64,000 nucleotides of DNA from IMG/VR virus record IMGVR_UViG_3300032242_002041, positions 164,287-228,286 of that record, one strand, 5' to 3'. A program made the position numbers and the translations under genes. Below the pieces are notes generated by a model. It did no database searches. It was not told the origin of the DNA and saw nothing but the letters and a program-made list of their open reading frames with translations. Below, one piece after another: positions 14,971-44,179 of this stretch (position 1 is the stretch's first letter; each line of letters opens with the position of its first letter).

Positions 14971-15432
14971 TTAAATTACAGTTGATTGTGTTGGACGAGT
15001 AAGATTATAACTAATGGAGCATCCGTTCTCGCCGTCTTCGGATACTTCAATTACTACAGCACGACCGGGATAGCGTTCGGCTATCTTTAAATATAAATCA
15101 TCGGCAATCATTTCACATGATTTCCAGTCTAGTTCTAAAACGGGATTCGAAACAATTCCGTTATTGGAATAGAGATTTTCAAGCCACCGTTTGAATTGGA
15201 TGAATTCGATATCTCTGTCGTTATGGAAGACATCGATTGACACCCGGAAATGAAAGATATGGCGATGAGGACTGGCCAAAAACGATACATCATATTCTCC
15301 TGCTGTGCATAATGCTGGGTCTGTTGCAGCCGCTGGATAGCGATGAATGCCTTCCTTACGGAATGTAACCCAAATTTGTCTCTGGGCTGCCGCTTTAATG
15401 CGTTCAATAGTTTCGCGTTCTTGTTGTATCAT
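14971..15432 (-). CDS. dpdL: QueD-like T-fold protein, probable CDG decarboxylase DpdL
   Basis: LASPHRHIF matches LxxxHRHxF; DRDIEFI, SCEMIA, VSEDGENG; second QueD paralogue in the cluster. Confidence 0.75.
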   Translation of the reverse strand: MIQQERETIERIKAAAQRQIWVTFRKEGIHRYPAAATDPALCTAGEYDVSFLASPHRHIFHFRVSIDVFHNDRDIEFIQFKRWLENLYSNNGIVSNPVLELDWKSCEMIADDLYLKIAERYPGRAVVIEVSEDGENGCSISYNLTRPTQSTVI

Positions 15433-16604
15433 TTCTGGTGGCTTTCTATATTAGTATTATTAAACGAGTCAATGGCATCATACATATCTGGAAAAATTGC
15501 ACGACTATTTAATTTTCTATCTTGGTCTAATTTGTTAAATTCTTCTACTGTATATTCAAGTCCGTCCCAATTGGATTTATAGGGAGTTCGATCGTCGTTT
15601 AACGAGGCAATTACGTTGTCAATGCCAAGAATATTTGAATAATCATTTTTAGAAATTCGCTGTCTAACCAACTCTCTCTGGTGATCAGTTAGTCGTTGAA
15701 TTGCCCACGGACCACCATTATCTCTCAGATTGTAGATATTAATAGTTATTGCTCGATGAGATATATTCAAAGTTTGATGCACCAAATCAATAAAATCCCA
15801 AATTGACAACGAGTTAATATTCATAAACACCATGTTAAAACTAAGGTGATGCTTTGCAATCAAGTTAATTGTGTGTAAATTTTCTAAGAAAACATTCCAT
15901 TTTCCGGGCCAACGAATATATTCATATTGTTCTGCAATTGATTCTCCGCTAACTAACCATTGTACATTACTAAACTGTTTCAACAATTCAAAAATTTTAT
16001 TTTCGTGTATTAGGCTAAGATTAGTATTAACACAAATACGACAAGATTTATTAACTTCTAATAATTTTCTTAAGACTATTTCGTTTTCTTTTATCATCAA
16101 CGGCTCGCCACCAGCAAGATATATTTCTTTAAGGTCGGCAGCAGATTCTAAAACATAATCTAACAAATCTCCTTTGGCTTCTTTCATCTTAACTACTTGA
16201 TATTTCTGTTCGGCCCATAGTGAGCTGAGCTCAGGGTCACAATATATGCAGGCAAAATTGCAGGTATTGTTCCAACGCAAATCAAGATATTTTAAATTAA
16301 AGTTATCAATATTGTTGTAAAACTCATCACCAAGATGGTTATATTTCTTTTTAAAATGATGTTGTAAAGTATGAGTACCAATCTGAGAGTGGCAATTTTT
16401 ACACCCTTCAACCGGAATATCATTTAACATCATTGTTTTGATATCGAGATTATTAGAGCCGCTTATTGTGTCTTTGATTGCAGGAGTTTTATTAATATTA
16501 CCTAATTTATTTTTACTCACACAACAATTTTCTATATTGCCTTGGGGGTCAATATACAGTGAAACCCACGGCGCTGGACAGAAATGTTTATTATCTATGG
16601 TCAT
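15429..16604 (-). CDS. radical SAM protein with N-terminal SPASM/twitch-like Cys domain
   Basis: FCPAPW..CC..GCKNC, then CNFACIYC, AGGEP. Confidence 0.85.
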   Translation of the reverse strand: MTIDNKHFCPAPWVSLYIDPQGNIENCCVSKNKLGNINKTPAIKDTISGSNNLDIKTMMLNDIPVEGCKNCHSQIGTHTLQHHFKKKYNHLGDEFYNNIDNFNLKYLDLRWNNTCNFACIYCDPELSSLWAEQKYQVVKMKEAKGDLLDYVLESAADLKEIYLAGGEPLMIKENEIVLRKLLEVNKSCRICVNTNLSLIHENKIFELLKQFSNVQWLVSGESIAEQYEYIRWPGKWNVFLENLHTINLIAKHHLSFNMVFMNINSLSIWDFIDLVHQTLNISHRAITINIYNLRDNGGPWAIQRLTDHQRELVRQRISKNDYSNILGIDNVIASLNDDRTPYKSNWDGLEYTVEEFNKLDQDRKLNSRAIFPDMYDAIDSFNNTNIESHQK

Positions 16605-23801: not shown

Positions 23802-24875
23802 TCAGTTAAAATTTCCTTCAAACCATGTGTCCGGAAGTAACTTTGCCTGGTTAATTAAATCTAATGCTATAATTTTTTCTGGATGTAAATTATTAAAAAC
23901 ATCGTGAGTTTTAAATTCATGTTTATCCCAGGTATTCCAATTGGTCAGTCGAGAGTATTCAACTCGATCAACATTGTATAGCTTGCACAGACTGTAAAAT
24001 TCAAGAATTTCTCGAAAGTTAGATTGTTGCACAATCATTCGAGTATTAAACTTGAATCCTACTGCCTCTTTTTTATTTTTTAAAAATTCCAAAGACCTTA
24101 AAATGTCTGGCCACTGGCCACCGCGTCTAATTTTTTCATATGTATCGGGTCTAGCTGCATCAACTGATATAGTTACATTACTAATTGCTGATTCTATGTG
24201 TTTGACTCTATGCCAATTTTTTTCAGCCAATAAGCCATTACTGTGTAAACTTATTGCTATGTTTGGAAAGTCTTTTAAATTTAATAGTCCCAAAAAACTT
24301 TGTATCATAGGACTAGAAAAAACTTCTCCAGCGCCACTGGTTACTAAGTGTATACGTTGACTAGATGGTTTTGAAAAAATATTTTGAAAGATACGTTGAC
24401 TAATTTCTTCTTGTCTAGCTATATCTTCCTCACTGATTTTGGTTACCTTTGTTCTACAACTAGGACAACTAAGATTGCAGGTAGAATCAACATTTAACGC
24501 AATTTCGTAAGGCATGTCATGTAGACTGGCATCTTCGATTTGCCGAGCTACATTTAACGGAAGAGTGTCCGCGGTGTTTAAATTGCCATTGATTATTAAT
24601 GCACATTGATTCTCGTCGCAATAATCATAAGTGCCATCTATAATGCTTTGTCTGATGCGTTGTGCTTTTGGAGACGACAGCATCTGTTCCAGTGTTTCGG
24701 TTAAAATATTTCCAATTCTGGTATCGCCCCAACCGGGACAGGGGCAAAGATGAACTTCGCCTATGACACTGATGTGTATGTTTATAAACGGACTAAGACA
24801 AAAGTAACCTTTAAGATTCTTAGGAGGAAACTTTTTCTTATCTATAAACACCACCGGAACAGCTACAGAGTTCAA
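23802..24875 (-). CDS. radical SAM protein with N-terminal SPASM/twitch-like domain
   Basis: FCLSPF..CPC..YCDENQC, CNLSCPSC, GAGEVF. Confidence 0.85.
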   Translation of the reverse strand: MNSVAVPVVFIDKKKFPPKNLKGYFCLSPFINIHISVIGEVHLCPCPGWGDTRIGNILTETLEQMLSSPKAQRIRQSIIDGTYDYCDENQCALIINGNLNTADTLPLNVARQIEDASLHDMPYEIALNVDSTCNLSCPSCRTKVTKISEEDIARQEEISQRIFQNIFSKPSSQRIHLVTSGAGEVFSSPMIQSFLGLLNLKDFPNIAISLHSNGLLAEKNWHRVKHIESAISNVTISVDAARPDTYEKIRRGGQWPDILRSLEFLKNKKEAVGFKFNTRMIVQQSNFREILEFYSLCKLYNVDRVEYSRLTNWNTWDKHEFKTHDVFNNLHPEKIIALDLINQAKLLPDTWFEGNFN

Positions 24876-26304: not shown

Positions 26305-26943
26305 CTACTTACCGTCGACATGGAGCTGGCTACCATTATTGAAGCTGGGGCTAAATGGACTTTGTGCTACACGCCCGCCTTTGGATTGTGACCATGCATA
26401 GCCGGCACGATGTCCTGAACAGTCTTTGGTGCAAGGGCTACCAAGGAAGCTGAGTTCGTTTAATTCATCTTTGAGCCAGGTATCAGCAAAGGCTTTGCAC
26501 AATGCTTGAATTTTTTTATTTCGAGTAATTTCTAAATGATATGTTTTATTACCGGCTTTGGTTTGTTGACTAGGATCTCTATAGCCAGCATAGACTTTAT
26601 GTACCGGTGTACTACTGATCAAATCTCGACAGCTAGAACCCGCACGTTCAGGCATGGGTTCGGTGCAAGGACTACAGGTAGTCAGGATGATACTGCCATT
26701 GGGTATGTCGCCAAAACGGTCATGATACGCATCAATAGCCGCTCGTTCAGCGTGAACATCACCTGATTCGATCCAGTAGTTCAGTGCTGCCACACAGTTG
26801 TTGTTACGATCCAGCACCGCGGCTGCACACATCATGTAAGCATCGGGATCTCGACGCTGTCCGTCAATTACCAACTCACAAAGACGTACCAGGATTTCAT
26901 CTAGTTGCTTTCTATCATGTATTTGAAAATCACTTATGCGCAT
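26305..26943 (-). CDS. zinc-dependent deaminase-like protein plus C-terminal Cys peptide
   Basis: HAE...SPC..C deaminase motifs; MRISDF leader; LNE boundary before PCTKDCSGHRAGY. Confidence 0.75.
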   Translation of the reverse strand: MRISDFQIHDRKQLDEILVRLCELVIDGQRRDPDAYMMCAAAVLDRNNNCVAALNYWIESGDVHAERAAIDAYHDRFGDIPNGSIILTTCSPCTEPMPERAGSSCRDLISSTPVHKVYAGYRDPSQQTKAGNKTYHLEITRNKKIQALCKAFADTWLKDELNELSFLGSPCTKDCSGHRAGYAWSQSKGGRVAQSPFSPSFNNGSQLHVDGK

Positions 26944-27655
26944 CTTTAATCCAGTCGTCGGGAACTACACCGTGTTTTTCAACAAACAGCTCGTGCAGTT
27001 TTTTTGGAGTAATTTTGTATTTTTTGGCTATAGACTTCATCATGTGATCTATAGCATCGTAGCTGTAGGGATGGCGAAGATCTTTTTCAAGATCATCAAC
27101 ACTGCCTTCTTTTAATGGAATAACCTTGACATCTTTATCATACCGTTTCCAAGGTGTAAAGTTTTTGTTAGTTCTAATCGTATCAAAGTCAGCAACATAT
27201 ACACCGCCTGACTTGTTCCAGTCAGCACCGCCAACAAATTTCATGGACACACGGTCTCCTAACTTGTGCATGTCAGGGATTTGTATAGCCACATTCATAA
27301 CAAAGTTTTTATTGTTAGTTAAATCAGCATAACGGCTAGCTAGTTCGTTAGGAATATCAATAGTAACTGTATAGTTTTGTCGTAAGAAGTGCTGGGCCAA
27401 TTGCCTATATCTCTTTAATACCTGCGCCTGATTACTACTGTGATTTAACGCATAGGTAACTTCTAAATAAATGTGACGGCATTTGAATTGTTCGGCTATA
27501 GATTGAATGGTGTCAATGTCTTTGAACTGGTTGACAATCAAAGTTTTTTTGCCGTAGGCAGCAGTCCTCTCAACTTCAGGACCGATGATATAATCGGGTC
27601 TATTGCCGGTTGGATGCACATTTTTTGTGCTGGTAGTAAAGTCACTGGCTCTCAT
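26930..27655 (-). CDS. putative virion internal protein carrying a paralogue of 16927..17442
   Basis: MRASDF leader; GPEVERTAAYGKKTLIV..HIYL..GVY..FTPWKRYDKD; LKE boundary. Confidence 0.7.
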   Translation of the reverse strand: MRASDFTTSTKNVHPTGNRPDYIIGPEVERTAAYGKKTLIVNQFKDIDTIQSIAEQFKCRHIYLEVTYALNHSSNQAQVLKRYRQLAQHFLRQNYTVTIDIPNELASRYADLTNNKNFVMNVAIQIPDMHKLGDRVSMKFVGGADWNKSGGVYVADFDTIRTNKNFTPWKRYDKDVKVIPLKEGSVDDLEKDLRHPYSYDAIDHMMKSIAKKYKITPKKLHELFVEKHGVVPDDWIKDAHK

Positions 27656-30600
27656 TCAACACCAAGGATCTGTTGAACCTGATTGACATAAGCACTAACA
27701 TCACTGGTGCCAATTTCGTCTACGTCACCTACATTGTATGCCACTTCCTCAATGGCCTGTGTGACTTTATCTAGCCCAAATTCCATTATCAAATCAGTGT
27801 GCGCCACTAGGATACGCCTGATAATGGCGATCTCAACGGCTTCGCTACTGGTTGAATTTTCGTCCTCGACCAAGTCTTGTTCAAGTCGATTGATCAGTTT
27901 GGAAACTGTTGTTTCAAAGGACTGTATGCTGGGTTTACCCAATCGAGCCTGCTCAATGGCAGCTTCTTCGCTATCGCCACGTCGTGTGATGCTGACCATT
28001 CGAGTTTGAGGATTGTAATAGACCACATAGCCGCGGATCACACTTTTCTGTGGAATAGTAGTACCGGGCATTTCAAATTCTTCTGTGACTTTGTCCTCAA
28101 ATGGCAAATACCAGAACCAGTTTTGGAAACCACCTGGGTTGGTATCATAGTCCATATGCGCACGATTACGAGCACCAGCCATCATACGTTTGAACTCATT
28201 TTCTGCGCCATGTAGTTCAGCAATGTTTTCTAGCTCGTCGTACAGTTGACCAGCAAGAAAACTGTCCCTGTGACGTTCAATTTTAGGAGCCAGGCGGCGA
28301 TAAACTCTAGCCATTTCTGCTCGAACATCTGTAACAGTTTCGGCTACGCCTTGCTTGCGCTCGTAGTCACGAATGATGTCAGCCCGCATATTAGGATTAC
28401 GTTCAATAGCCCGTAGCACTGCCTCGGGATAACGTGCAGGTTGTTTTGCTTTAACTGCTATGTGAGCATCTGGCATGTCATTCCATTCACCATCATCATA
28501 ATCATCACTTTCGTTCTTGGGTTTGACATGATGTTTTTTCATGTTGATTGCAATAGCAGCCTGCTGTGCGGCATTGGCGGCTTCCTCAAAGTCATCTCGA
28601 GGATTCATGACAACCGAACGAGATTGAGGTTGATTAACTGATTTTGCTGTCGGAGATTGATTAATGGTTTGAGCTTGTGAGCCGGCCGCATTTCTATGAC
28701 CAATTGCACCAATAATACTATTAACATCATTACTGCCCTGCATACCGGCTGTATTTTGTAATATTTTCCATACCGCTTGTTTATTACTTGCGTTACCTAG
28801 TGCTGACATTAAATCATTTTGATTTTGAATTTTACCAGACTGAATTTGTTGTATAACAGCGGTAGGATTGACTACACTAGGACCACTGCTTTGTGCCTGA
28901 GCCGCACCGGCGCCGCCCAAGGCCATGGCACCTGCTAGGGCTGCACCACCTAATGCTGATTTCCAGCCTTCATCCAGATCAATATCAGCCGGAGCAACCC
29001 ATACTGTATCGTGAGTCCATTTTGTTGGATCTTTCTTGCGCATGGCGGCCACATAGGCTTCAGCTTCTCTAGTATTCATGGGTTTGCCAATCTTATTTGT
29101 GGATTTGATACGCTTGACTTGACCGTTTTGTTTGGTATACACCGCATAGTGGTCACGTAGTCCTGCGGCCCCACTTCCACCCCAATTGCCTTCCTTGACT
29201 GGTGTGTCTTGTTGAGGTGCTGGTTTTAGCAGTGTGCGATACTGTTGTTGAAATGCCGCTTTGCTCATACCATATGCAGTATAAAACTGGCGCTCATTCA
29301 TATGTTCTACGTCTTGACGCATGATATCTATATCACTCAAACTGTCGCTTTCATCTAACTCGTCGTACCAATCATCTTCTTCTTGTTTGTCAGCATACTG
29401 GTTGTATTCAACATCACTCAGGTGCATGCTGTGTTTACCGTGATTGTACAAGTCGACAATAACAAATGTTCCACTTGGACTGAGTTCATAGATCTCGCCA
29501 GTCTTGCCTTCAAATTCGTTGGGTGCTGTAACAATGATAGGATCACCCGGGTGTAATCGGTTAGCAGATTCGTCAATGTTTAATAAATCAAATTCATCTT
29601 CTGGATTAGGAACTGGTAGTGTCTGAGATTTAATCTGAGGAGCGGCAGGCTTGGCCTTAGGTTTAGATTTGGATTTGGAAGGTGCAACATCTAAATCACT
29701 AAACGGAGCCTGCACACGCGGAGTCTGTTGTTTTTTGGTCGTGGTCAAATTATCCTGATCTATGTTTAATGCCTGTGCGGCCTGTGCCGGCAGTGAGTTT
29801 ATTTGAGTTCGTAATTTTGCTATTTCGGCCTTGACATTATCTGATGGTGGCTGTTGTTGTAATTGATTAATTTGCATTTTAAGATCTTGTAGTTCTTTTT
29901 CAACTCCTGGATCTGCACCAGGCGCAATGATTGTTGTGGGCTCTGGGGTTATTGTCTGTGGTGTTGTCTTGGCTGCTTGTTTAGGACGTGTGGACTGTTT
30001 TGCTCCAGTCATTGATTGGATGGTGTTTTGTAAACGATCGTTAGTAGCTTGTATGCGAGCTAACTGAGCTTCAAGACTATTATTTTCAGAATCTAACCCG
30101 TCAATCTCACGCCCTTGCTCTTGGTCAAGTGATACTAATTTTTTTAAGAGTTCGTCTTGTTTAGTGTTAGCACCCTGAATAGCAGCCAACTGTTGATCAC
30201 TACGTTTTTGATGGTCCAATTCATCTTTGGCCAAAGCTGCCATAGCATTAGGAGCTGCAGGGTGCTTGGCTTGTATTTTTCTTACAGCGTTGGTGGTTTC
30301 GGCGTCGCCAAAGTTTGGATCTTCAGAATTTTTTTTTTGAGCTCGTTCTGAGACTGGGCTTATCTTAGGTTCAGCATACCCTGTCAATTTGGGCTGGAAA
30401 GGATCTGCGGGTTGTTTTAACTGTGGACGAGTGGTTACTTTTTTCTGCCCACCTAACCATAAGGCAAAATTATTACGATCAGCTAATGTTTGTAGTGCAA
30501 ATTGATTACGAGTTTGGCGGCTCATATTTTTTAATTTTAATAAAGTATGATATATTTGATTACGTGACATAGTAATTGGTTCAGGACTGTTCATCCAGCG

Positions 30601-31137
30601 GATAGTTGCAATATCAACATTGTCGTCATGTGCTTTACGCATTTGTTCGTAGGCATATTTGGCAGCAGCTACAGGAGAAATTGCGGCTGTTTGTTCTTTA
30701 ACTGTGGACTCGTATGTAGGACCAGTGTCGTCTCGACCTGCTAACCAATCAACAAAACTAGAAAAAGTCGATTTAGCTTTTCCTAACGCAGTATTGCTTG
30801 GAGGAGTAGCACCGGTTACACGTTGTTGCGGAGTAACTAAATCTGTACCAGCACGAACAGGTTGGGCGGGTGCTGGAACTTGGTCAGCTTCACCTAAGCT
30901 ACCATAGCCCATGCACTCATCTTTAATCTTGTAATAGCCGTCGCGCTCAGTTTTGCACTTTTGAAATTCTTTAACCAATGCCGCCTTAGATTCTGGAGTA
31001 GTAGCTGTTTTAGCACGAGCAACCAAGTCATCCATCTTCATAGCTAAATCGTCAATGCGACGTTGTTCTAATTGGTCAACAGCACCTTCTGCAAGGCGTC
31101 GTTCGTGATCTGTGTTAAATAGGTCTAATGCAAACAT
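27652..31137 (-). CDS. large modular putative internal virion polyprotein
   Basis: Many short modules between LxE/VxE/GVAE sites; coiled coil; KOW-like segment; internal hydrophobic helix. Confidence 0.75.
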   Translation of the reverse strand: MFALDLFNTDHERRLAEGAVDQLEQRRIDDLAMKMDDLVARAKTATTPESKAALVKEFQKCKTERDGYYKIKDECMGYGSLGEADQVPAPAQPVRAGTDLVTPQQRVTGATPPSNTALGKAKSTFSSFVDWLAGRDDTGPTYESTVKEQTAAISPVAAAKYAYEQMRKAHDDNVDIATIRWMNSPEPITMSRNQIYHTLLKLKNMSRQTRNQFALQTLADRNNFALWLGGQKKVTTRPQLKQPADPFQPKLTGYAEPKISPVSERAQKKNSEDPNFGDAETTNAVRKIQAKHPAAPNAMAALAKDELDHQKRSDQQLAAIQGANTKQDELLKKLVSLDQEQGREIDGLDSENNSLEAQLARIQATNDRLQNTIQSMTGAKQSTRPKQAAKTTPQTITPEPTTIIAPGADPGVEKELQDLKMQINQLQQQPPSDNVKAEIAKLRTQINSLPAQAAQALNIDQDNLTTTKKQQTPRVQAPFSDLDVAPSKSKSKPKAKPAAPQIKSQTLPVPNPEDEFDLLNIDESANRLHPGDPIIVTAPNEFEGKTGEIYELSPSGTFVIVDLYNHGKHSMHLSDVEYNQYADKQEEDDWYDELDESDSLSDIDIMRQDVEHMNERQFYTAYGMSKAAFQQQYRTLLKPAPQQDTPVKEGNWGGSGAAGLRDHYAVYTKQNGQVKRIKSTNKIGKPMNTREAEAYVAAMRKKDPTKWTHDTVWVAPADIDLDEGWKSALGGAALAGAMALGGAGAAQAQSSGPSVVNPTAVIQQIQSGKIQNQNDLMSALGNASNKQAVWKILQNTAGMQGSNDVNSIIGAIGHRNAAGSQAQTINQSPTAKSVNQPQSRSVVMNPRDDFEEAANAAQQAAIAINMKKHHVKPKNESDDYDDGEWNDMPDAHIAVKAKQPARYPEAVLRAIERNPNMRADIIRDYERKQGVAETVTDVRAEMARVYRRLAPKIERHRDSFLAGQLYDELENIAELHGAENEFKRMMAGARNRAHMDYDTNPGGFQNWFWYLPFEDKVTEEFEMPGTTIPQKSVIRGYVVYYNPQTRMVSITRRGDSEEAAIEQARLGKPSIQSFETTVSKLINRLEQDLVEDENSTSSEAVEIAIIRRILVAHTDLIMEFGLDKVTQAIEEVAYNVGDVDEIGTSDVSAYVNQVQQILGVE

Positions 31138-33654: not shown

Positions 33655-33863
33655 CGAACTTCCTTTACACTGCCAATATGCCAGAGTGGCACACCATACT
33701 GTGCTTGCATTAGTTGACGGGCCAGTTGTGCGTTGGGCGCAGTCACAGTTACATCAATATAGCCTACATAATTAGGTTGAGTAATCTTAACCGGCGCTGT
33801 CCATAGCTTGGCAGCCACGGCTGTGTTTTGTTTTACGGCTTCCGATATTTCGTAGAATCTCAT
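33651..33863 (-). CDS. small putative internal virion protein
   Basis: MRFYEISE leader; ATGA overlap with the upstream stop. Confidence 0.6.
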   Translation of the reverse strand: MRFYEISEAVKQNTAVAAKLWTAPVKITQPNYVGYIDVTVTAPNAQLARQLMQAQYGVPLWHIGSVKEVR

Positions 33864-34693
33864 TGTCCTGTCCACTTGGCTATCATAGTTGCTTGACTGG
33901 TATAAATGCCAGTGCCTCTTCGTCCGCTACGCATACTACTGCTACCAGGTTTTACTGGAAATGTATATCTAGTCCAATCCGCCGTTTGATCAACGACCTG
34001 GTCACCGCGTTGTGGCCGGTATTCATCAGTGGGCGTCATGTTGTAACCTAGGACTTCAACTCCTGGAATACTATTTAACATTAGCCACATCTGTTGTCCG
34101 TGACGGGTTTGTGTTTCGCCAGCTTCTACTGTGAGCTTTAATATGCTTAAGGCAATGCCATACAAGGCTTTGCCAAGCCCCTGTCCACGAAAATCAGGAT
34201 CAACCACTACAGTATCAACTTTCCAAGTTTTCATGTAGTCCTGAGTATAATACAAATCCATTTCGGCAGCTAATATTTGGCCATCAAAGATCATAATTTC
34301 TATATTTTCAGCATCGGGTTGATTAACAGCATAGTCAAACTTACTACCGCCTGGCAGGGGTTTTGTTTTGGGCGGAGTTTTAGGATCGGCCAAGGTGCCT
34401 TTTTTGCCCCAGTCACCTAGTTCACTTTTTGGCAAGCGGGCTATCTCAAATAATTCTGGATCAAAGTCATCAGCACTGATAAAATGTGTAGTGCCATCAC
34501 GATGTTGTAGTTGCACAGCATCATCCTCTGATTCAACTTGATGTATGCTCCAACCAAGACTGTTTAGTACATGTTCAATCTGTGGTTGTCGGTCCGTGGC
34601 GTTCCACCAACGATTGGCCAGAACAAAAATAGGATCTGGAACATCATCATTGTTGTCACGCTCAGGACTGGGAGCAAATTCTCTTAATCTCAT
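33860..34693 (-). CDS. GNAT acetyltransferase-domain protein
   Basis: VVVDPDFRGQGLGKALY acetyl-CoA motif; MRLREF leader; LFE boundary. Confidence 0.8.
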   Translation of the reverse strand: MRLREFAPSPERDNNDDVPDPIFVLANRWWNATDRQPQIEHVLNSLGWSIHQVESEDDAVQLQHRDGTTHFISADDFDPELFEIARLPKSELGDWGKKGTLADPKTPPKTKPLPGGSKFDYAVNQPDAENIEIMIFDGQILAAEMDLYYTQDYMKTWKVDTVVVDPDFRGQGLGKALYGIALSILKLTVEAGETQTRHGQQMWLMLNSIPGVEVLGYNMTPTDEYRPQRGDQVVDQTADWTRYTFPVKPGSSSMRSGRRGTGIYTSQATMIAKWTGQ

Positions 34694-35169
34694 AGGTATC
34701 CTACCCAGGCTGGTCCTGCGTATCCTTGTGGAAATGCCTTTAATGCTTGTGTGGTTCTATGTCCACCTTCAACCAACGCATAGCCGTCGGGCATTTTTAT
34801 AACAATGATGGGTTCTCCACTGACCCCTTGTTGTTGTATCTTGGCGGCTTGTGCGGCATGCCGTTCGGCATCTCTGGGCACCTGATTGGGATTTTTAGAG
34901 CCGCCTTCTCTTTTACGAATTTGTTCCTGTGTAGCAGGTGTAAAGATGTCCATGGTAATAGGCAATTTTTCTAAACGCCATTGCCGGATTGGATATTCCT
35001 GTAACAAATGCTGTATGTGGGCTTTTTTATCTTCAAGTTCCATGTTATCAGGAATACGACCATACAACCAATCTTTGACCACATAGTCAGGCCAGTGTTT
35101 AGGCACCATGCTGCGTATTAAACGCCATGCTCCGCCTTGATATTCAAACAAAAATTCTTCAGCTCTCAT
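34690..35169 (-). CDS. ParB/Srx-like domain protein
   Basis: EPIIV...YALVEGGHRT; MRAEEFLFE leader. Confidence 0.7.
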   Translation of the reverse strand: MRAEEFLFEYQGGAWRLIRSMVPKHWPDYVVKDWLYGRIPDNMELEDKKAHIQHLLQEYPIRQWRLEKLPITMDIFTPATQEQIRKREGGSKNPNQVPRDAERHAAQAAKIQQQGVSGEPIIVIKMPDGYALVEGGHRTTQALKAFPQGYAGPAWVGYL

Positions 35170-36249
35170 TTAGCAGTTCCAACGACGGCGTGCCTTGCAG
35201 ATAGCTTTGTCAGGAGTTTTTGCACAGCTAATATTGTGCATCTTCATTTGACCACGACTGCGTGAGCAGTAGCTCTTGCGACGCTTGCTGGCTTTGCTAC
35301 CTTTTTTGAGCTTGGAAGGTTTAGTAGTCACAGCAGTTTGTAGTTTGCTACCAGGATGCTCACGGCGATATGTTTTGACGGCTTTCTTACTCATGCCATC
35401 TGTGCGGTCTCGATTGTTGACCTTCTGCCAGGCTTCGGTTTCCATAATAGTTGTTGTGGTTGCAAACACATACAGTTCATCATCGTCCAAGCTCTCTAGG
35501 TCTTCCCAGATCACTTCGCTATCTACGCCATTACGCTCAGCAAGAGTTTCAATAATGTTTTCGATTAAGTCAAATTCTTCAGCCAGTTCTGTGTCTTCCG
35601 CCACACCTTGCTGTCTTTGGACAGGGCTGTCTCTAAGTGCATCTCGATAAAACTCTTTGAAATCTTGTGCCAATTCTCTTGCTGACCACGCCCAAGTTTG
35701 ACGGTCCCAATCGTCTGTCATCTCAGCTTCAAGTTTAGCACCTGGTGCTCGACCACGACTAAACCCTATACGAACAGTATGTTCAATTTGTTTATTAACC
35801 AACTTTGCAAATAGTTTGCCATTGGGATTTGGATTAATTGTTACTTTATATCCGTGTCGTTCGGCAAACTGTATCGTTGGCTGTAAGAACTGGATTTTAG
35901 GATCAACAACACCAGCTTGAGGCGGAACAGCTTCCGCCACACTCTCGTTAGGCACACAGTTACGCACCTGGCCGCCATTCCGGCCTTTCTTTGTACCTTC
36001 GGCATGTTTGCCAGGCCAGCAACGAGTATAGCCATTGGCATCTTTAGCACCCTTCTTGATTTCATTGAGATTGCCATGTGTTTGACACATGCCACAGTCT
36101 TCACAGACCATTTCCATTTCTGTGCTTTCATTGTGCTTTTTCTTACCAGCACAATGAGCTCGTTGCGAGAAGCCCTTGGGGTGGCTACAGTTGATACTGC
36201 TCTTGTATTTTTGACTCCACTTTTCAGTGATAAATTCATAGGCTTTCAT
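35170..36249 (-). CDS. putative internal virion polyprotein of basic Cys-containing peptides
   Basis: MKAYEFITE leader; Lys/Cys-rich modules between xxE sites. Confidence 0.75.
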   Translation of the reverse strand: MKAYEFITEKWSQKYKSSINCSHPKGFSQRAHCAGKKKHNESTEMEMVCEDCGMCQTHGNLNEIKKGAKDANGYTRCWPGKHAEGTKKGRNGGQVRNCVPNESVAEAVPPQAGVVDPKIQFLQPTIQFAERHGYKVTINPNPNGKLFAKLVNKQIEHTVRIGFSRGRAPGAKLEAEMTDDWDRQTWAWSARELAQDFKEFYRDALRDSPVQRQQGVAEDTELAEEFDLIENIIETLAERNGVDSEVIWEDLESLDDDELYVFATTTTIMETEAWQKVNNRDRTDGMSKKAVKTYRREHPGSKLQTAVTTKPSKLKKGSKASKRRKSYCSRSRGQMKMHNISCAKTPDKAICKARRRWNC

Positions 36250-39200
36250 TCTTTGTGTTTCCTTTTCTGTCCTCTACGCATATTTAACTGCCAACGTGCC
36301 AGTTGTCCTTTACGACCTTTGGCATGACTCGCTTTTTCTAATTCAGCCATTGTAGCACCTTTGGGGATGCCGTGACGAACGCTATCGCCTGGACGACCAG
36401 GTCCTTTGCCGTCGGCAAAATTTTCTTGTAATCCTCTGACTGACATATTGTGTCCAGTGCTACGTTCTAGTTCGTTGGCACGAGCATCAGCCTGCGACCA
36501 AGGCACGTTATCCATTCTGCTGATCTCGCGTCCTAAGGTAACATCGTATATTGCCCAAGTGCCTACTCTATTGGTAGCATCCGCGGGTTGGTCAAAGTTC
36601 TGTGCCACATCTGGCTCAACATCCTTGACTGCTGTTTCTTGCTTGCGTGGTCTATAACCATAGTCGTGAGTGTCGTTTGGCAAACCCTTCATTGTCAGCC
36701 ATTTATCAAACGTTGCATCTGCTTCTTGTTTGTCAGCGGCATAGAACCGGTCCACTACACGTAGATTTACATCGCCAAGATTTACAATTTCGTAGTTGTA
36801 GTCTGTGGGCTTTTTGGTTTGAGTAATGCGCTTGGCTAACTTGGCACGTGGTGTCATAGTTGCTGGATCTTCCCAAGGGCGAACCTGGAAGCCAATGCCT
36901 TGATCCACATACTTGTCGTAGACCTGATCAGCCACTTCGCCTTTGCTCTTGCCCTTGACTATTTCCAGCGTCTTGCCAGTGTTGACATCATACACTTCCC
37001 AGTCTTGCTCACCCATGTTGACCAGCTGATATTCACCAGAGTCCAAGGCTTCACGACCATACTTGGCCCATACTCGGTTTTTAACTTCACTTTCGGGGTA
37101 ACCATTCCACTCGGCACCAGGAACTGGTTCCCACCGACCGTTGACGTTTTGATACAGTCTAAAACGCTGATTCATTTTCTTTTCTTTACCGATGGTCTTT
37201 TCGGCCCATTGTTTCTTGAGTTGTTCTGCGGTGAGTTCACCCGCGGCATATTGACTGAACAGAGCTAGTTCACTGTCGCCTTCGGGCGCTACTAACTTGT
37301 ACAACTTCTTGGCATACTCTCTGCGTTCTTCAGCAGGGTTAGCCGCCAAACTCATAGCACGGGCAAAACGCAACATGGTTGTTTGTAATTTTTCCGGATC
37401 AGCTGACTCTTCTGCTAACCAATCACCACCTGGCGATCTAAATTCAATATAGCCTTTTTGTATGTGGGCACTGGTGTACTTGCCATCGCCTACCCCTTTT
37501 TGTATTTCTTTGTGTGCTAGTTCAATCAAGCCACTCTGCATGAGTTTGATCGCACCCATAGGATCAGCACGACCGCCTTTGATGTTTTCACGGAACTTGC
37601 TCATGGCACTCTTGGTGTAGGTATTGGCTTCGCGACCAAATGACCGTAACACATACTCGTCACCCAAGAACAGGATTAATTTCAAGTAGTCAACATCGCC
37701 ACCTTTGAATGGCACACTAACGCCCATGTGCAGGCCAGTTGAGCTGTTGGTATAGGCATTACCTTCTTGAGGATTATTGGCCCAGTCACATACTTGTTGT
37801 AGTTTTTCTAATGCTGTCAACAGGGGCATAGGAGGACTTACAATTTCCAACCCAAAATCTTCACGATCATCGGGTTCTAAACTGGTATCAGGTTCTACAA
37901 TAAACTGTCCTTCTCGGCGAGTAGCTTGGTGATAACCGCTACTTACTTTAACCGGCATGTCAACGGCACTGTTCAAACTGTCACCAATTTCATCCCAATC
38001 ACGACTTCCGTCATTGCCACCGCCACCGGTCATGTAAGGCCAGTCTAAGTCATATGAATTGGCCACATCACTCATCCAGCGTAGACCCACATCATCAAAG
38101 AATCCTGAATCGTCATCAATTTGATAATTGTCGCGGAAATCATCCAGTGCGGCATCCCAGTTGGCACCTTCCTTACGTACTTCATCTGCTATTAAATCAT
38201 CCAACAAGCCTTCGGCTTCGTTTTGTGCATCCAGGTATTTGTCGTAAAGTGGGTTGGCTTCAGCATACAAGATCTGTTCTTTACTGCTTGTGAACTTAGG
38301 TGCCCGTTCGCCCGCTTGTATAATGTCATTCATTTCATCGTCGGTTAAATCCAACAACTCCAACTGTTTTTGTATTTCGTTGTCAAGATCCCAATCGCCT
38401 TCATCTACTAGAACTTTACGAATCAAGTCCTCGGCTTCTTCTCTAAAGTCTTTGTGCATTTGCTCGTCATACCACTCATAATACTGTTCGTCAAGTCCTT
38501 CTTGTAAGGCACGCTCTTGTCTAGGACTTAAATTTCCGTAGTCGCCACCACTAAAAAAGTCTATGATATCTTGGATGCTACGACAACGTTCGTCCTGATC
38601 ATAGTCAGGTTCCATTTCGTAGTCACTGTCGCCGTTGTTGCTGGTGTCACGGAAGATTAACTCTGCTTCAAACCCAGCACGTATACCCTGGGCTTCTGGA
38701 CTCCGTGCCCACTGCATTAGATTGCTTGGACTCATACGTACTTCGTCTAGTTGCTCAACTGATTCGGCTACCTTTGTTTTTTTGAACTGTGATAATTCTA
38801 AGGCTAATTTTTCAAACAGGCCATTAGGATTAGCAATCTGCGGTTGTCCTTGACTGTTGGTTTTTAATTTTAATTTGTTAGCTTCTTTGCCAACTTGACC
38901 TGGCTTGATATCTTGTGTAAGCGCCATTGAATAGCGTGGATCTCGGGCCTGTTTCCGTGTAGGGATGTATCCCGATGCTGACTCCTCTACACCTTGCTTG
39001 GCACGTTGCTTGGCACGTTTGGCACGTTGTAAGTAGTATTTTTTTAATTCTAAATCTTTTGGTGTAGCAGTTCTGATCAGATCTAAATGTTGATCCACTG
39101 GAACTTTTTCAACTTCTATTGGTTTAAGTTCGGTTACGCTGGGCACGGAAGTAAACTCTCTGTCATTGCCGCCGGGCTCAAACAAAGGACGACCATTGGC

Positions 39201-40652
39201 ATCATACCTTGGTAACTTGTGTAGGTAAACCATTTGACCGTGTCTAATTTTGCCGCTGAATAAAACCAATTGCGGATCATTGGGAAATCCAGCAGTATCA
39301 GACCCTCGTTCTGTAAGGCCCATTGCTATAGCAAAATTTTTGTCGGCTGTGGCATAAATGGCTTTTTTATTACTCTTAGGATTGCCGCCGGTGTCTTCTG
39401 CCTGTTGTGGCGTCAGTACTGGAATCTCGTTTCTAGATCCGTGCCATAGATATTCTTGTGACGCACTTTCTTTAACTTCATCAGCGTGTAAGCCTTGGGC
39501 TTGCCCTACAGCAAAGTAGTCCGGGTGTAGTCTAGCATAGTCGCGCATTAAGATACCAGCACGGGCATTGGCTTCATTTTCCCATGGTGATCCTGTTTCT
39601 CCAGCTGTTGGTCCCATACGTTGACCATCGCGTTCGTGTTGATGCTTGTGTGTAAGTTCGTGTGCCACAGTGCGCAACACATCCATGATGTGACGATGGC
39701 CCCAGGCTACTTCAAGCAAGTGTTGATTGTTGATGTAACGGCCAAAAGTTTTGTTACGCACAGACCATTCAGGATCTTTGCGTAATTTAATTGTGGGCAT
39801 CTGCTTGAGTTTTAATTCTTTAAAACAAAAGTCAATAAAATCTTTTAGTATCTCTTCGTCTGAGGGAACAGGGTCTGGTTCCGTTACGGCTTCAACTATC
39901 TCTGGAGTTCGAAATCCATACTTTACAGGAGTCTTAACTACAGTTTTTTCTTTTAAACTGAGTTCCTGATCTTTGGCTGCGTTACGAGCATCATATAATT
40001 CTTTAATCTTGCCTTGACTACGTAACATTTTAAATGCCAAATTTTCTGGTCCAAATTCGCCGTGTTGTTCAAGTCCAGTTTGGCGCATCTTTTTAATCTT
40101 TTCAGCCATACAGGTCATCTGTTTTAAGTTGCCTGATTTGATAGCACGTTCAATTTGGTGCCCTACTGACTCAAATTTGTTTCGAGTGCTGGTATCGTCT
40201 ACCACTGACTTGACACGACGCGGAACTTGAATCCAGTCATTGTTTAAGATACTGTAAATGCCTTGACTAATATGCGGAGCATCGGCATCTTGAACATATA
40301 GTTCAACATCGTATCCACCAATTGTAATATTGTGTTGTTCGTTATACTGAAACTTTTTAGCATCAAACAGTTCACGATAAACTTCGTTATCGGGCATTTT
40401 AACTACTAGGTGTAGATCGATGTCTGAATTGGGTGTGTATGTGTAAGCGGCATTGCTACCACTAATAGTTATGTCTTTGAGGTCAAGGTCTGTAACGCCC
40501 AGAAACTCGCGAAAATCTTCAGCTATTAACAATAGCTGTGCTTTAACTTCTGGCTTTAAATGCTCAGTAGAATCCCATAATCTAGGATTTAATCGATTAT
40601 TAAATTTGACGGCATCGTCAAGGTTATAGGCGTCTAATTCAAGAATATTCAT
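36246..40652 (-). CDS. multi-enzyme polyprotein: Pol-beta nucleotidyltransferase + HExxH metallopeptidase + ADP-ribosyltransferase-like + amidoligase
   Basis: GSNAAY..SDIDLH; AHELTH..WENEA; WHGS..IYAT..E; GFEAE..DTSL..EIVSP..TGLHM..IEFR; start 40652 just after TAAATA. Confidence 0.8.
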   Translation of the reverse strand: MNILELDAYNLDDAVKFNNRLNPRLWDSTEHLKPEVKAQLLLIAEDFREFLGVTDLDLKDITISGSNAAYTYTPNSDIDLHLVVKMPDNEVYRELFDAKKFQYNEQHNITIGGYDVELYVQDADAPHISQGIYSILNNDWIQVPRRVKSVVDDTSTRNKFESVGHQIERAIKSGNLKQMTCMAEKIKKMRQTGLEQHGEFGPENLAFKMLRSQGKIKELYDARNAAKDQELSLKEKTVVKTPVKYGFRTPEIVEAVTEPDPVPSDEEILKDFIDFCFKELKLKQMPTIKLRKDPEWSVRNKTFGRYINNQHLLEVAWGHRHIMDVLRTVAHELTHKHQHERDGQRMGPTAGETGSPWENEANARAGILMRDYARLHPDYFAVGQAQGLHADEVKESASQEYLWHGSRNEIPVLTPQQAEDTGGNPKSNKKAIYATADKNFAIAMGLTERGSDTAGFPNDPQLVLFSGKIRHGQMVYLHKLPRYDANGRPLFEPGGNDREFTSVPSVTELKPIEVEKVPVDQHLDLIRTATPKDLELKKYYLQRAKRAKQRAKQGVEESASGYIPTRKQARDPRYSMALTQDIKPGQVGKEANKLKLKTNSQGQPQIANPNGLFEKLALELSQFKKTKVAESVEQLDEVRMSPSNLMQWARSPEAQGIRAGFEAELIFRDTSNNGDSDYEMEPDYDQDERCRSIQDIIDFFSGGDYGNLSPRQERALQEGLDEQYYEWYDEQMHKDFREEAEDLIRKVLVDEGDWDLDNEIQKQLELLDLTDDEMNDIIQAGERAPKFTSSKEQILYAEANPLYDKYLDAQNEAEGLLDDLIADEVRKEGANWDAALDDFRDNYQIDDDSGFFDDVGLRWMSDVANSYDLDWPYMTGGGGNDGSRDWDEIGDSLNSAVDMPVKVSSGYHQATRREGQFIVEPDTSLEPDDREDFGLEIVSPPMPLLTALEKLQQVCDWANNPQEGNAYTNSSTGLHMGVSVPFKGGDVDYLKLILFLGDEYVLRSFGREANTYTKSAMSKFRENIKGGRADPMGAIKLMQSGLIELAHKEIQKGVGDGKYTSAHIQKGYIEFRSPGGDWLAEESADPEKLQTTMLRFARAMSLAANPAEERREYAKKLYKLVAPEGDSELALFSQYAAGELTAEQLKKQWAEKTIGKEKKMNQRFRLYQNVNGRWEPVPGAEWNGYPESEVKNRVWAKYGREALDSGEYQLVNMGEQDWEVYDVNTGKTLEIVKGKSKGEVADQVYDKYVDQGIGFQVRPWEDPATMTPRAKLAKRITQTKKPTDYNYEIVNLGDVNLRVVDRFYAADKQEADATFDKWLTMKGLPNDTHDYGYRPRKQETAVKDVEPDVAQNFDQPADATNRVGTWAIYDVTLGREISRMDNVPWSQADARANELERSTGHNMSVRGLQENFADGKGPGRPGDSVRHGIPKGATMAELEKASHAKGRKGQLARWQLNMRRGQKRKHKE

Positions 40653-40669
40653 GATAGTATTTACCGGGC

Positions 40670-40696
40670 AAACAAAAGCCGCTTTGATAGCGGCTT
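40670..40696 (-). terminator. rho-independent terminator
   Basis: AAGCCGCT/AGCGGCTT stem followed by a U-rich tract on the minus strand. Confidence 0.7.
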
Positions 40697-40718
40697 GTGT
40701 CATTTAAACAAAAACAGT

Positions 40719-43468: not shown

Positions 43469-44179
43469 TTATTTAGTCGGGATTATCTGCATAGTTTTTC
43501 TTATAAGGCCAGGGCGAACTAAACCGAGCATGGTTAACCACAGCATTTCGTTGTGATCAACAAAAAAGTAATCTTGGGTCCTATTAAACGGCCCTACTAT
43601 CCATGCGTTGAGCGCAGGGCTTACCCTAACAGTCTGTTGATTTAATAAAAATCCCGTTAGATGAGTCTTTTGTTCCGCGGTCAATTTGACTATTTTAAAA
43701 TAACTACGAAATTGGTGTTGAGGGTTTTTTAGTTGTATAGTATTTGGAGGACGATTAATATCTGCTCGACTGTAACTGTTACTTTCTACTCCATTGAGTT
43801 GATCTACCCGATCAATTAAAGTTAAATCGTTGGTGTAAAGGTATCCTTGGTTGGCACTTACTACTAGTTTAAAATCTACAGGTGCAGTTAACAACAGCGT
43901 TGCCAAGGTGTGTAAGTTATCAACCGTTTGGTCGGTAATTTCTTTTCTTCGCTGTCCTAGTATATGTTGACGGCCTAATACTTGTCCGGTCTTGTGCCAT
44001 CGTTGCATGGCTATGCTACGCCACTCTCGGCGACGTTCAATCGTTCGATCAATTTCGTCATGACCAAGGTCGCGCAAAGCACTGGCTTCATCCATTGTGA
44101 AACTTAGCACGTATTCAAATCGATTATGAAACAATCGATCTTTGACAACCGATTTAAATTGTTGGATCGCTTTGGTCAA
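43469..44179 (-). CDS. hypothetical protein
   Basis: 236-aa ORF downstream of clpA. Confidence 0.7.
   Translation of the reverse strand: MTKAIQQFKSVVKDRLFHNRFEYVLSFTMDEASALRDLGHDEIDRTIERRREWRSIAMQRWHKTGQVLGRQHILGQRRKEITDQTVDNLHTLATLLLTAPVDFKLVVSANQGYLYTNDLTLIDRVDQLNGVESNSYSRADINRPPNTIQLKNPQHQFRSYFKIVKLTAEQKTHLTGFLLNQQTVRVSPALNAWIVGPFNRTQDYFFVDHNEMLWLTMLGLVRPGLIRKTMQIIPTK

Follow-up and report, generated by a model that had tools for sequence, protein, structure and literature searches.

The 64,000-nucleotide stretch analysed here (hereafter the window) covers positions 164,287 to 228,286 of IMG/VR record IMGVR_UViG_3300032242_002041, and forms the terminal 64 kb of a 228-kb viral contig with a completeness estimate of 66%. 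Its minus strand encodes an 1161-residue protein, P0001, which carries a Sec-type signal-like segment deep within the chain, directly behind a motif of the kind cut by the prohead protease of phage T4. We propose, with a probability of roughly 0.6, that P0001 typifies a family of capsid-packaged polyproteins that are diced by the prohead protease, and that dicing unmasks Sec, lipoprotein and twin-arginine translocation (Tat) signals on the fragments that are ejected. The narrower claim at the core of this proposal, namely that an export signal is unmasked by cutting at a junction, we hold somewhat more firmly.

An initial annotation, made from the letters of the window, had drawn attention to a segment of this kind, and it exists as described: at 28582-28980 of the minus strand (residues 720-852), DLDE is followed by G-W-K, a hydrophobic run and A-Q-A, and then by a Glu-free, Gln/Asn-rich domain which ends in DFEE. 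At 62% of the chain its placement in the middle of the protein is roughly right, and the LxE-GWK motif corresponds to L721-D722-E723↓G724-W725-K726 (here and below, an arrow marks a predicted or known cut). The hydrophobic h-region, S727-A746, comprises 20 residues without charge or polar amide; K726 supplies a positive n-region residue, and signal peptidase I is predicted to cut after A746-Q747-A748, before Q749. The Kyte-Doolittle (KD) hydropathy of the h-region, 1.3-1.4, lies under the value of 1.6 usual for membrane spans, which fits a cleavable signal routed by SecA. The 19-residue KD maximum of the whole protein falls in this segment (1.43 at residue 728), and an apolar run of 20 or more residues arose in two of 2000 shuffles of P0001. 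The segment begins at residue 724 of the 1161 in the translation product, not at its N-terminus; it is therefore no signal peptide of the primary product but a masked, signal-like segment, which would become N-terminal only upon the putative cut after E723.

The passenger behind this segment, which we call module A, is compositionally distinct. Residues 724-848 contain no Glu in 125 positions, against 7.2% Glu elsewhere in P0001 (P about 9e-5), Gln and Asn together make up 26% of the mature part against 12% elsewhere, and seven Lys/Arg stand opposite three Asp. A Glu-free passenger would be immune to a Glu-specific protease. AlphaFold2, supplied with nine module-A sequences, predicts core helices at module residues 35-43, 50-57, 63-74 and 82-94, and leaves both the signal segment (predicted local distance difference test, pLDDT, about 35) and the Gln/Asn-rich tail disordered; by this model the signal segment would lie outside any fold. 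Foldseek found no match to the four-helix core in the PDB at E <= 0.001, and the passenger has no Pfam match and no muralytic domain. Among the nine sequences, the signal segment is invariant while its flanks diverge.

The broader family places this segment in context. A word search of metagenomes recovered at least 429 homologues of P0001, many of them on contigs of 100-370 kb, and the protein itself is present on a second contig of 345 kb. Conservation is patchy: residues 1-83, 524-596, 934-1019 and 1092-1161 are common to most members, and residues 660-900, which include the signal segment, to only 5-8 of 119 homologues. The order and combination of modules differ among members, and the family is one of shuffled, modular proteins; homologues carry RMF, Sigma70_r4, GNAT, LysM and GH19 modules, and P0001's own modules match no known domain.

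When the 120 best homologues were scanned for uncharged hydrophobic runs, 30 proved to contain such segments: 28 within cassettes of two types, and two (P0058 and P0105) as a longer, signal-anchor-like segment followed by a LysM passenger. The P0001 type, found in 21 homologues, consists of E↓G-[WIL]-K-S, a Gly/Ala/Leu run, and A-Q-A, A-H-A, A-N-A or A-S-A. A second type, present in nine, reads E↓G-[IV]-[KR]-D, followed by an uncharged run of 16-19 residues, L-S/T-G-C and A-T-A-P, and to judge from its residues the L-S/T-G-C is a textbook lipobox; P0015 and P0016 carry both types. Written as one consensus, the two types begin [LIMV]-x-E↓G/N-[WILV]-K/R. A third occurs in P0035, P0039, P0075 and P0146 as [LIV]-x-E↓I/M-D/S-R-R-x-F-L-K (RRGFLK or RRDFLK), an h-region and A-x-A, and its twin-arginine motif, seen in four homologues, would be expected about 0.09 times by chance in the 156,663 residues concerned. 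P0001 itself has neither a lipobox of the form [LVI][ASTVI][GAS]C nor an S/T-R-R-x-F-L-K motif, both being features of homologues. In this family the three canonical kinds of bacterial export signal are found inside the chain, each right after the same three-residue motif: every one of the 30 cassettes has Glu at P1 and L, I, M or V at P3, with P2 and positions further upstream variable, and no type-I cassette lacks an A-x-A behind its h-region. The residues preceding each signal are strongly acidic, and would disfavour membrane engagement until removed. It had been suggested that relatives be inspected for LxE-GWK fused to other passengers, and this pattern is borne out by the 28 of 120 best homologues and by more distant proteins, in which the cassette fronts at least seven unrelated passengers. 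One of these, in P0145, is a muramidase of the GH19 family, which Pfam scores at 47.9 bits (cut-off 25.5), and peptidoglycan, the substrate of muramidases, lies outside the cytoplasmic membrane.

Two further properties of the family bear on cleavage. Several members (P0015, P0016, P0136, P0143, P0039, P0075 and P0146) bear two or three signals on one chain, P0136 and P0143 in the form of two Sec-type cassettes each; all signals of such a chain can adopt an N-in/C-out orientation only if the chain is cut apart, which supports cleavage between modules. Moreover, a profile of module A searched against 1.84 billion representative proteins retrieved 24 proteins, in none of which does the module stand at the true N-terminus. 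Among the more distant carriers that this search brought in are P0145, P0136 and P0143. The only truly free-standing small gene, P0121 (167 aa, on two contigs), places a 32-residue acidic leader ending in I-E-E↓G before the signal. This leader also holds a degenerate twin-arginine copy, IDRRGVLNEF. Other apparently free-standing proteins with module A or a lipoprotein module, P0122-P0127, were set aside, since most are pieces that gene callers made out of full-length genes with frameshifts or truncations. P0123, for instance, is the last piece of a family member split over at least four reading frames on a 41.6-kb JGI contig (L005:4362-6609), owing either to assembly indels or to decay of the gene.

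BLAST end-points on P0001 cluster at residues 524, 597, about 851 and 1019-1020, and a hydrophobic-x-E motif (NIDE↓S, ELDE↓S, DFEE↓A and KVTE↓E) immediately precedes each cluster. With five conserved P0001 modules projected onto all homologues, [LIMV]-x-E lies within three residues of 554 of 640 projected junctions (~87%) against 77 expected (12%), an enrichment that is inflated to an unknown degree by the relatedness of the sequences and by boundaries set at P0001 motif sites, and yet is still large. It holds irrespective of the partner module, and for the conserved module in the middle of the chain ('mid') the motif is present at 99% of the upstream and 69% of the downstream junctions projected. 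AlphaFold2 modelled residues 920-1161 with low confidence (mean pLDDT 57).

A candidate protease for these sites is encoded on the same contig. The T4-like head module comprises genes for a portal, a core protein, a Peptidase_S77 (gp21-type) protease, a scaffold and a major capsid protein; the protease (G000:C1:48036-48686) scores 86.9 bits against PF03420 (cut-off 27) at G000:C1:48183-48632 and matches phrog_207 at E = 1e-56. Per 100 residues, [LIMV]-x-E occurs 6.3 times in the scaffold and 4.5 times in the core protein against 1.3 times genome-wide, and the major capsid protein begins with two L-L-E↓G sites. In T4, gp21 cleaves after L/I-x-E, and the internal proteins bear capsid targeting sequences (CTS) of 10-19 residues that end in L/I-x-E (PMC9026906). 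Residues 1-17 of P0001 fit such a propeptide: L/I/V-x-E↓G at residues 15-17, in the version L-A-E↓G in P0001, is invariant throughout the family save for its variable P2, and appears to delimit a 17-residue family leader, the putative propeptide.

Neighbouring genes strengthen the connection with T4. The CTS starts, as read from the T4 genome, are MKTYQEFIAE↓A (ipII and ipIII) and MKTFKEFTS (ipI), and similar starts are found in five genes flanking that of P0001 and in three elsewhere on the contig (8 of 429 open reading frame (ORF) starts, versus 7 of 1704 internal Met). P0145, P0136 and P0121 also begin in this manner. Such starts are suggestive of packaging and no proof of it. One of the neighbours, of 359 aa, contains what we term the KWSQKYK module (WSxKYKxSIxC..PKGFSQ.AHCAGRKK), which is small, basic and Cys-containing; this protein ends in DUF6321. 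In at least 35 P0001 homologues the KWSQKYK module is a C-terminal add-on behind ..V-N-E↓, L-D-E↓ or L-G-E↓. In the cultured T4-like cyanophage S-SM2, SSM2_108 (L018:2695-3123, 142 aa) starts with MKTLKQFLKE and has the module at its end after ..F-R-E↓, its gene lying in a structural cluster between a tail-fibre gene and that of terminase gp17. On these sequences, a T4-type CTS and a polyprotein junction could each give rise to the same mature module, and its position behind both is the best evidence for equating the two kinds of site. The module is probably a conserved packaged internal peptide, and may bind DNA.

We envisage that P0001 is probably made late and incorporated into the prohead, where the gp21-type protease would cut after the Glu of each junction [LIMV]-x-E, E723↓G724 included. 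In the precursor the signal would be masked, being 723 residues from the start and directly behind an acidic stretch; after the cut G724 would become a new N-terminus, whose free amine, together with K726, the Gly/Ala/Leu core and A-Q-A↓Q, may be read as a Sec signal. The resulting 13-kDa fragment would be retained in the head and ejected unfolded with the DNA into the cytoplasm of the next host, from which SecA/SecYEG may export it post-translationally, a route which its low hydrophobicity fits. Trimming by LepB (signal peptidase I) at A748↓Q749 would then release the mature passenger into the periplasm; it is basic, lacks Glu, measures about 100 residues and combines a predicted four-helix core with a Gln/Asn-rich tail. 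Sister modules in homologues would employ the same device with lipoprotein (Lgt/LspA) and Tat signals and, because some of these sister signals are Tat-type, the fragments are expected to start from the cytoplasm rather than from the periplasmic side. The initial annotation had suggested that cleavage would create a new N-terminus targeting the module to the membrane or periplasm during injection. The recurring cassettes, the gp21-type protease and the junction motif all support such targeting; the timing is better revised, as cytoplasmic export after ejection fits the Tat-type sisters better.

Several observations weigh against this proposal, in addition to the inflation of the junction statistic. 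We infer cleavage at E723, packaging, ejection and export from sequence analysis, and the specificity of the contig's protease is carried over from T4 by analogy. The gene for P0001 neighbours replication-type genes and lies outside the head module. The start of P0001, MFALDLF.., has a hydrophobic residue at position 4 and Phe at position 7 and shows no clear similarity to a T4 CTS; its N-terminal motif recurs in no other ORF of the contig, which also holds no paralogues. A CTS-like start on a gene for a dCMP/cytidine-deaminase-like protein implies either a packaged deaminase effector, or that this pattern does not always denote packaging. When six passenger modules were searched against Pfam, only LysM and a TAT_signal match were returned, and the latter is sub-threshold (19.7 bits against a cut-off of 22.7). 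The cultured phages searched hold no homologue of P0001: megablast and tblastn with the gene, the protein and module A found no relative in 50,697 deposited phage records, and a profile of residues 920-1161 had no match in Phosso, Atu_ph07, Vibrio phage 2.275.O, CBB or XbC2. Nor did the whole protein match a family in Pfam or PHROGs, or its C-terminal module anything in the ESM Atlas.

Alternatively, the polyprotein might never be packaged, and might be processed within the infected cell in the manner of flaviviruses. Internal signals and signal-anchors would then act co-translationally and be cut by host signal peptidases I and II, with [LIMV]-x-E cleaved by a cytoplasmic protease or left uncut. 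Host peptidases could use the internal A-x-A and lipobox without any phage cut, and the location of the gene among non-structural genes would be less surprising. However, the second signal of an uncut multi-signal chain would insert wrongly, leaving its lipobox Cys or A-x-A to face the cytoplasm; Tat signals need a finished, folded cytoplasmic substrate with a free N-terminal signal; and an acidic stretch before each h-region contradicts the positive-inside rule. Further, the free-standing P0121 retains its leader and cut site rather than beginning with the signal, and the CTS-like neighbours and shared KWSQKYK module tie the junctions to capsid-targeting cleavage of the T4 type. Overall we consider processing in the infected cell unlikely. 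Packaging and cutting could also be followed by direct entry of the Gly/Ala-rich helices into the inner membrane, as anchor, conduit or a tether akin to signal-arrest-release (SAR) domains, without recourse to Sec, Tat or signal peptidases. In T7 and P22, proteins from inside the head function at the envelope independently of Sec, the segments resemble SAR domains in being Gly/Ala-rich and weakly hydrophobic, and a muramidase is among the passengers. Yet spontaneous insertion needs none of A-x-A, the lipobox Cys or RRxFLK, all of which are conserved in or just after the segments, and a Tat motif makes sense solely for export from the cytoplasm. Direct insertion is accordingly improbable in our estimation, and an uncleaved transmembrane anchor was rejected on the grounds set out for these rival accounts.

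Two other accounts were weighed. The segment might be a low-complexity Gly/Ala linker with no role in targeting, given that such linkers are frequent in modular proteins and that AlphaFold confidence in the segment is low. Against this stand its invariance amid diverging flanks, its fixed position after E↓G-x-K and before A-x-A, and the lipobox or Tat signals that take its place in sister modules; elsewhere in these proteins, junctions are acidic or rich in Pro/Gln, not in Gly/Ala, and shuffling seldom reproduces the apolar run. The linker was rejected on these grounds as highly improbable. The P3 residue could otherwise be the alternative start codon of a separate secreted protein, as it is Met in many cassettes (IMDE, NMEE, DMTE) and gene callers begin P0122 and P0123 there. 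The P3 codons are, however, CTG in P0001, CTG and ATG in P0015 and ATA in P0121, and no Shine-Dalgarno sequence lies upstream, for which reasons internal initiation was rejected; P0123 is moreover the gene fragment described above, and an n-region reading M-D-E-G-W-K would be net negative. We attach almost no weight to this explanation. Cleavage in the prohead followed by export of the ejected fragments remains our preferred interpretation of P0001, the features of which are given in Table 1 with those of its neighbours.

Table 1. Features of the P0001 gene and of adjacent genes, with positions in the window (aa, residues of the protein concerned).
Feature	Position	Strand	Basis
P0001 modular polyprotein gene, 1161 aa	27652..31137	-	ORF list and translation
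17-residue putative propeptide MFALDLF...RRLAE↓G, candidate capsid-targeting or cleaved leader	31087..31137	-	Family-invariant motif end
Conserved 'mid' module, aa 524-596, between NIDE↓S and ELDE↓S	29350..29568	-	High-scoring segment pair end-point peaks at 524, 597
Junction D-L-D-E, aa 720-723; predicted cut after E723 (P3 = L721, P1 = E723)	28969..28980	-	Homologue cassettes
Masked Sec-type signal-like segment, aa 724-748	28894..28968	-	n-region G-W-K, 20-residue Gly/Ala/Leu h-region, c-region A-Q-A
Passenger (module A), aa 749-852, basic, Glu-free, Gln/Asn-rich; DFEE end (aa 849-852, 28582-28593) is the next junction	28582..28893	-	Sequence
Predicted four-helix core of passenger, aa 753-817	28687..28881	-	AlphaFold2, pLDDT about 85
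Conserved helical module M3, aa 934-1019, between GVAE↓T and KVTE↓E	28081..28338	-	Conservation across homologues
Swappable module M4, aa 1020-1091, between KVTE↓E and DLVE↓D	27865..28080	-	Three alternative modules fill the slot in the alignment
Most conserved, C-terminal module, aa 1092-1161	27655..27864	-	In 118/119 homologues
359-aa neighbour, start MKAYEFITE↓KWSQKYK.., then basic Cys module	35170..36249	-	T4 CTS-like 9-mer
159-aa neighbour, CTS-like start MRAEEFLFE↓	34690..35169	-	N-terminal pattern
277-aa neighbour, start MRLREF.., GNAT-like region	33860..34693	-	Homologous to N-terminal half of P0145
Downstream 241-aa gene, start MRASDFTTS (cf. T4 ipI MKTFKEFTS)	26930..27655	-	N-terminal pattern
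212-aa dCMP/cytidine-deaminase-like gene, start MRISDF.., L-D-E at residues 14-16	26305-26943	-	PF00383, 33.6 bits

The family-B DNA polymerase places the source phage among uncultured jumbo members of the T4 superfamily: it shares 50% identity with its counterpart in Sinorhizobium phage Phosso, 46% with the one in Atu_ph07 and ~42% with those of Rak2/CBB-like jumbo phages. Relatives keep the same gene order, in which a gene for a giant Amidoligase-like protein, small genes, a ferritin-like gene, the P0001 gene, a radical-SAM gene and the DNA polymerase gene follow one another. In the window the giant protein has 1485 aa (36246-40703, minus strand), with weak matches to NTP_transf_2 and Amidoligase_2, and with phrog_36119 at its N-terminus; its counterparts in relatives have 1650-2234 aa, and it is possibly a further polyvalent cargo protein of the same cluster. 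As regards the 277-aa neighbour, P0145 joins the homologous N-terminal half through L-H-E↓D-W-K and a signal to its GH19 muramidase, and this passenger is absent at the window locus (33860-34693). Two radical-SAM genes, one of them QueE-like, adjoin the DNA polymerase gene (23802-24875 and 15429-16604, both minus strand), and their pairing beside it suggests a DNA base-modification pathway. A 758-aa ATP-dependent protease of Lon/AAA type (44154-46430, minus strand; phrog_4871, E = 2e-234) is a second phage-encoded protease, which could in principle participate in processing. Outside the window, a homing-endonuclease-like gene (phrog_314; G000:C1:44706-45641, equivalent to L006:4706-5641) lies directly beside the major capsid gene, the 398-aa product of which is short for a T4-like jumbo phage. 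A scan for the T4 late promoter (TATAAATA) returned eight copies across the contig, without pattern.

Packaged phage proteins are known to act in the host cytoplasm, as do T4 IPI and Alt, or to build the ejection conduit, as do T7 gp14-16. If our interpretation of P0001 is correct, then virion cargo has a third destination, the envelope, reached through host export machinery by means of a label that is silent until the head protease acts, and the delivery route would be one undescribed for any virus of bacteria. We can envisage, though with slightly less than even confidence, that SecYEG/LepB, Lgt/LspA/Lol and TatABC of the host would route the signal-bearing subset of the pre-made cargo of T4-superfamily jumbo phages to the periplasm and outer membrane in the opening moments of infection, before phage genes are expressed; possible uses would include superinfection exclusion, wall remodelling and the blocking of envelope-based defence. 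Such a role would also explain the persistence of large, hypervariable genes in many uncultured jumbo phages. It would furnish a search rule for envelope-directed cargo in metagenomes ([LIMV]-x-E, then a signal), and a design principle for periplasmic protein delivery by T4-type capsids. Literature on prohead proteases in combination with signal peptides, on cryptic signal peptides of phages, and on ejection proteins with lipoprotein or internal signals yielded no precedent, which is weak evidence given that most subscription journals lay outside the coverage.

Comparison with known systems clarifies which parts of the proposed device are familiar. SAR endolysins likewise send a muralytic enzyme to the periplasm via Sec by means of a weakly hydrophobic, Gly/Ala/Ser-rich segment, as might the segment before GH19 in P0145. 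SAR domains form the true N-terminus of newly made lysis proteins; by contrast, the P0001 segment is internal, lies behind a protease site and is followed by A-x-A, and its passenger is of no known enzyme type. The polyproteins of Flaviviridae resemble P0001 in that one product is split into cytoplasmic and exported parts by a viral protease and host signal peptidase. Their internal signal peptides are eukaryotic and act co-translationally at the ER membrane, whereas that of P0001 is bacterial and probably operates after translation and after a passage through the virion. Both SAR endolysins and flavivirus polyproteins are offered as functional analogies only. The prohead protease of the giant phages SPN3US and phiKZ, which belong to a different lineage, has a different cleavage motif, [S/A/G]-x-E. 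According to the abstracts of the studies concerned, a T4-related prohead protease cleaves many head-internal ejection (E) proteins of these phages behind Glu, after which they are ejected into the cell; of export signals exposed in this way the abstracts make no mention (PMC7411985, PMC10052503).

The closest parallels lie in T4 itself and among polyvalent proteins. IPI, IPII, IPIII and Alt share with the P0001 system the T4 superfamily, a gp21-type protease and short N-terminal propeptides ending in L/I-x-E; their cleaved products remain in the head and are ejected with DNA, and the neighbours of P0001 start almost as do T4 ipII and ipIII. Nevertheless, the T4 internal proteins are small, single-module and cytoplasmic and have no known export signal, whereas P0001 has 1161 residues, about ten modules and internal cut sites, and its own leader, unlike theirs, is not recognizably a T4 CTS. 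Polyvalent proteins, described from phages and conjugative elements, share with members of the P0001 family their very large size and many shuffled modules. The modules are effector-like, a description that may also suit those of P0001 homologues, and Iyer et al. (2017; PMC5512222) put forward that such proteins accompany the DNA into the host and are processed into pieces. That paper nowhere uses the terms signal peptide, lipobox, lipoprotein or transmembrane, and P0001 lacks the domains named therein; further, processing in the P0001 family would fall to the prohead protease at junction motifs, not to embedded peptidase domains. By analogy, the system joins the principle of the T4 internal proteins, with their CTS and gp21, to that of the polyvalent proteins (Iyer et al., 2017), in a proposed device that is simple and widespread in uncultured jumbo phages.

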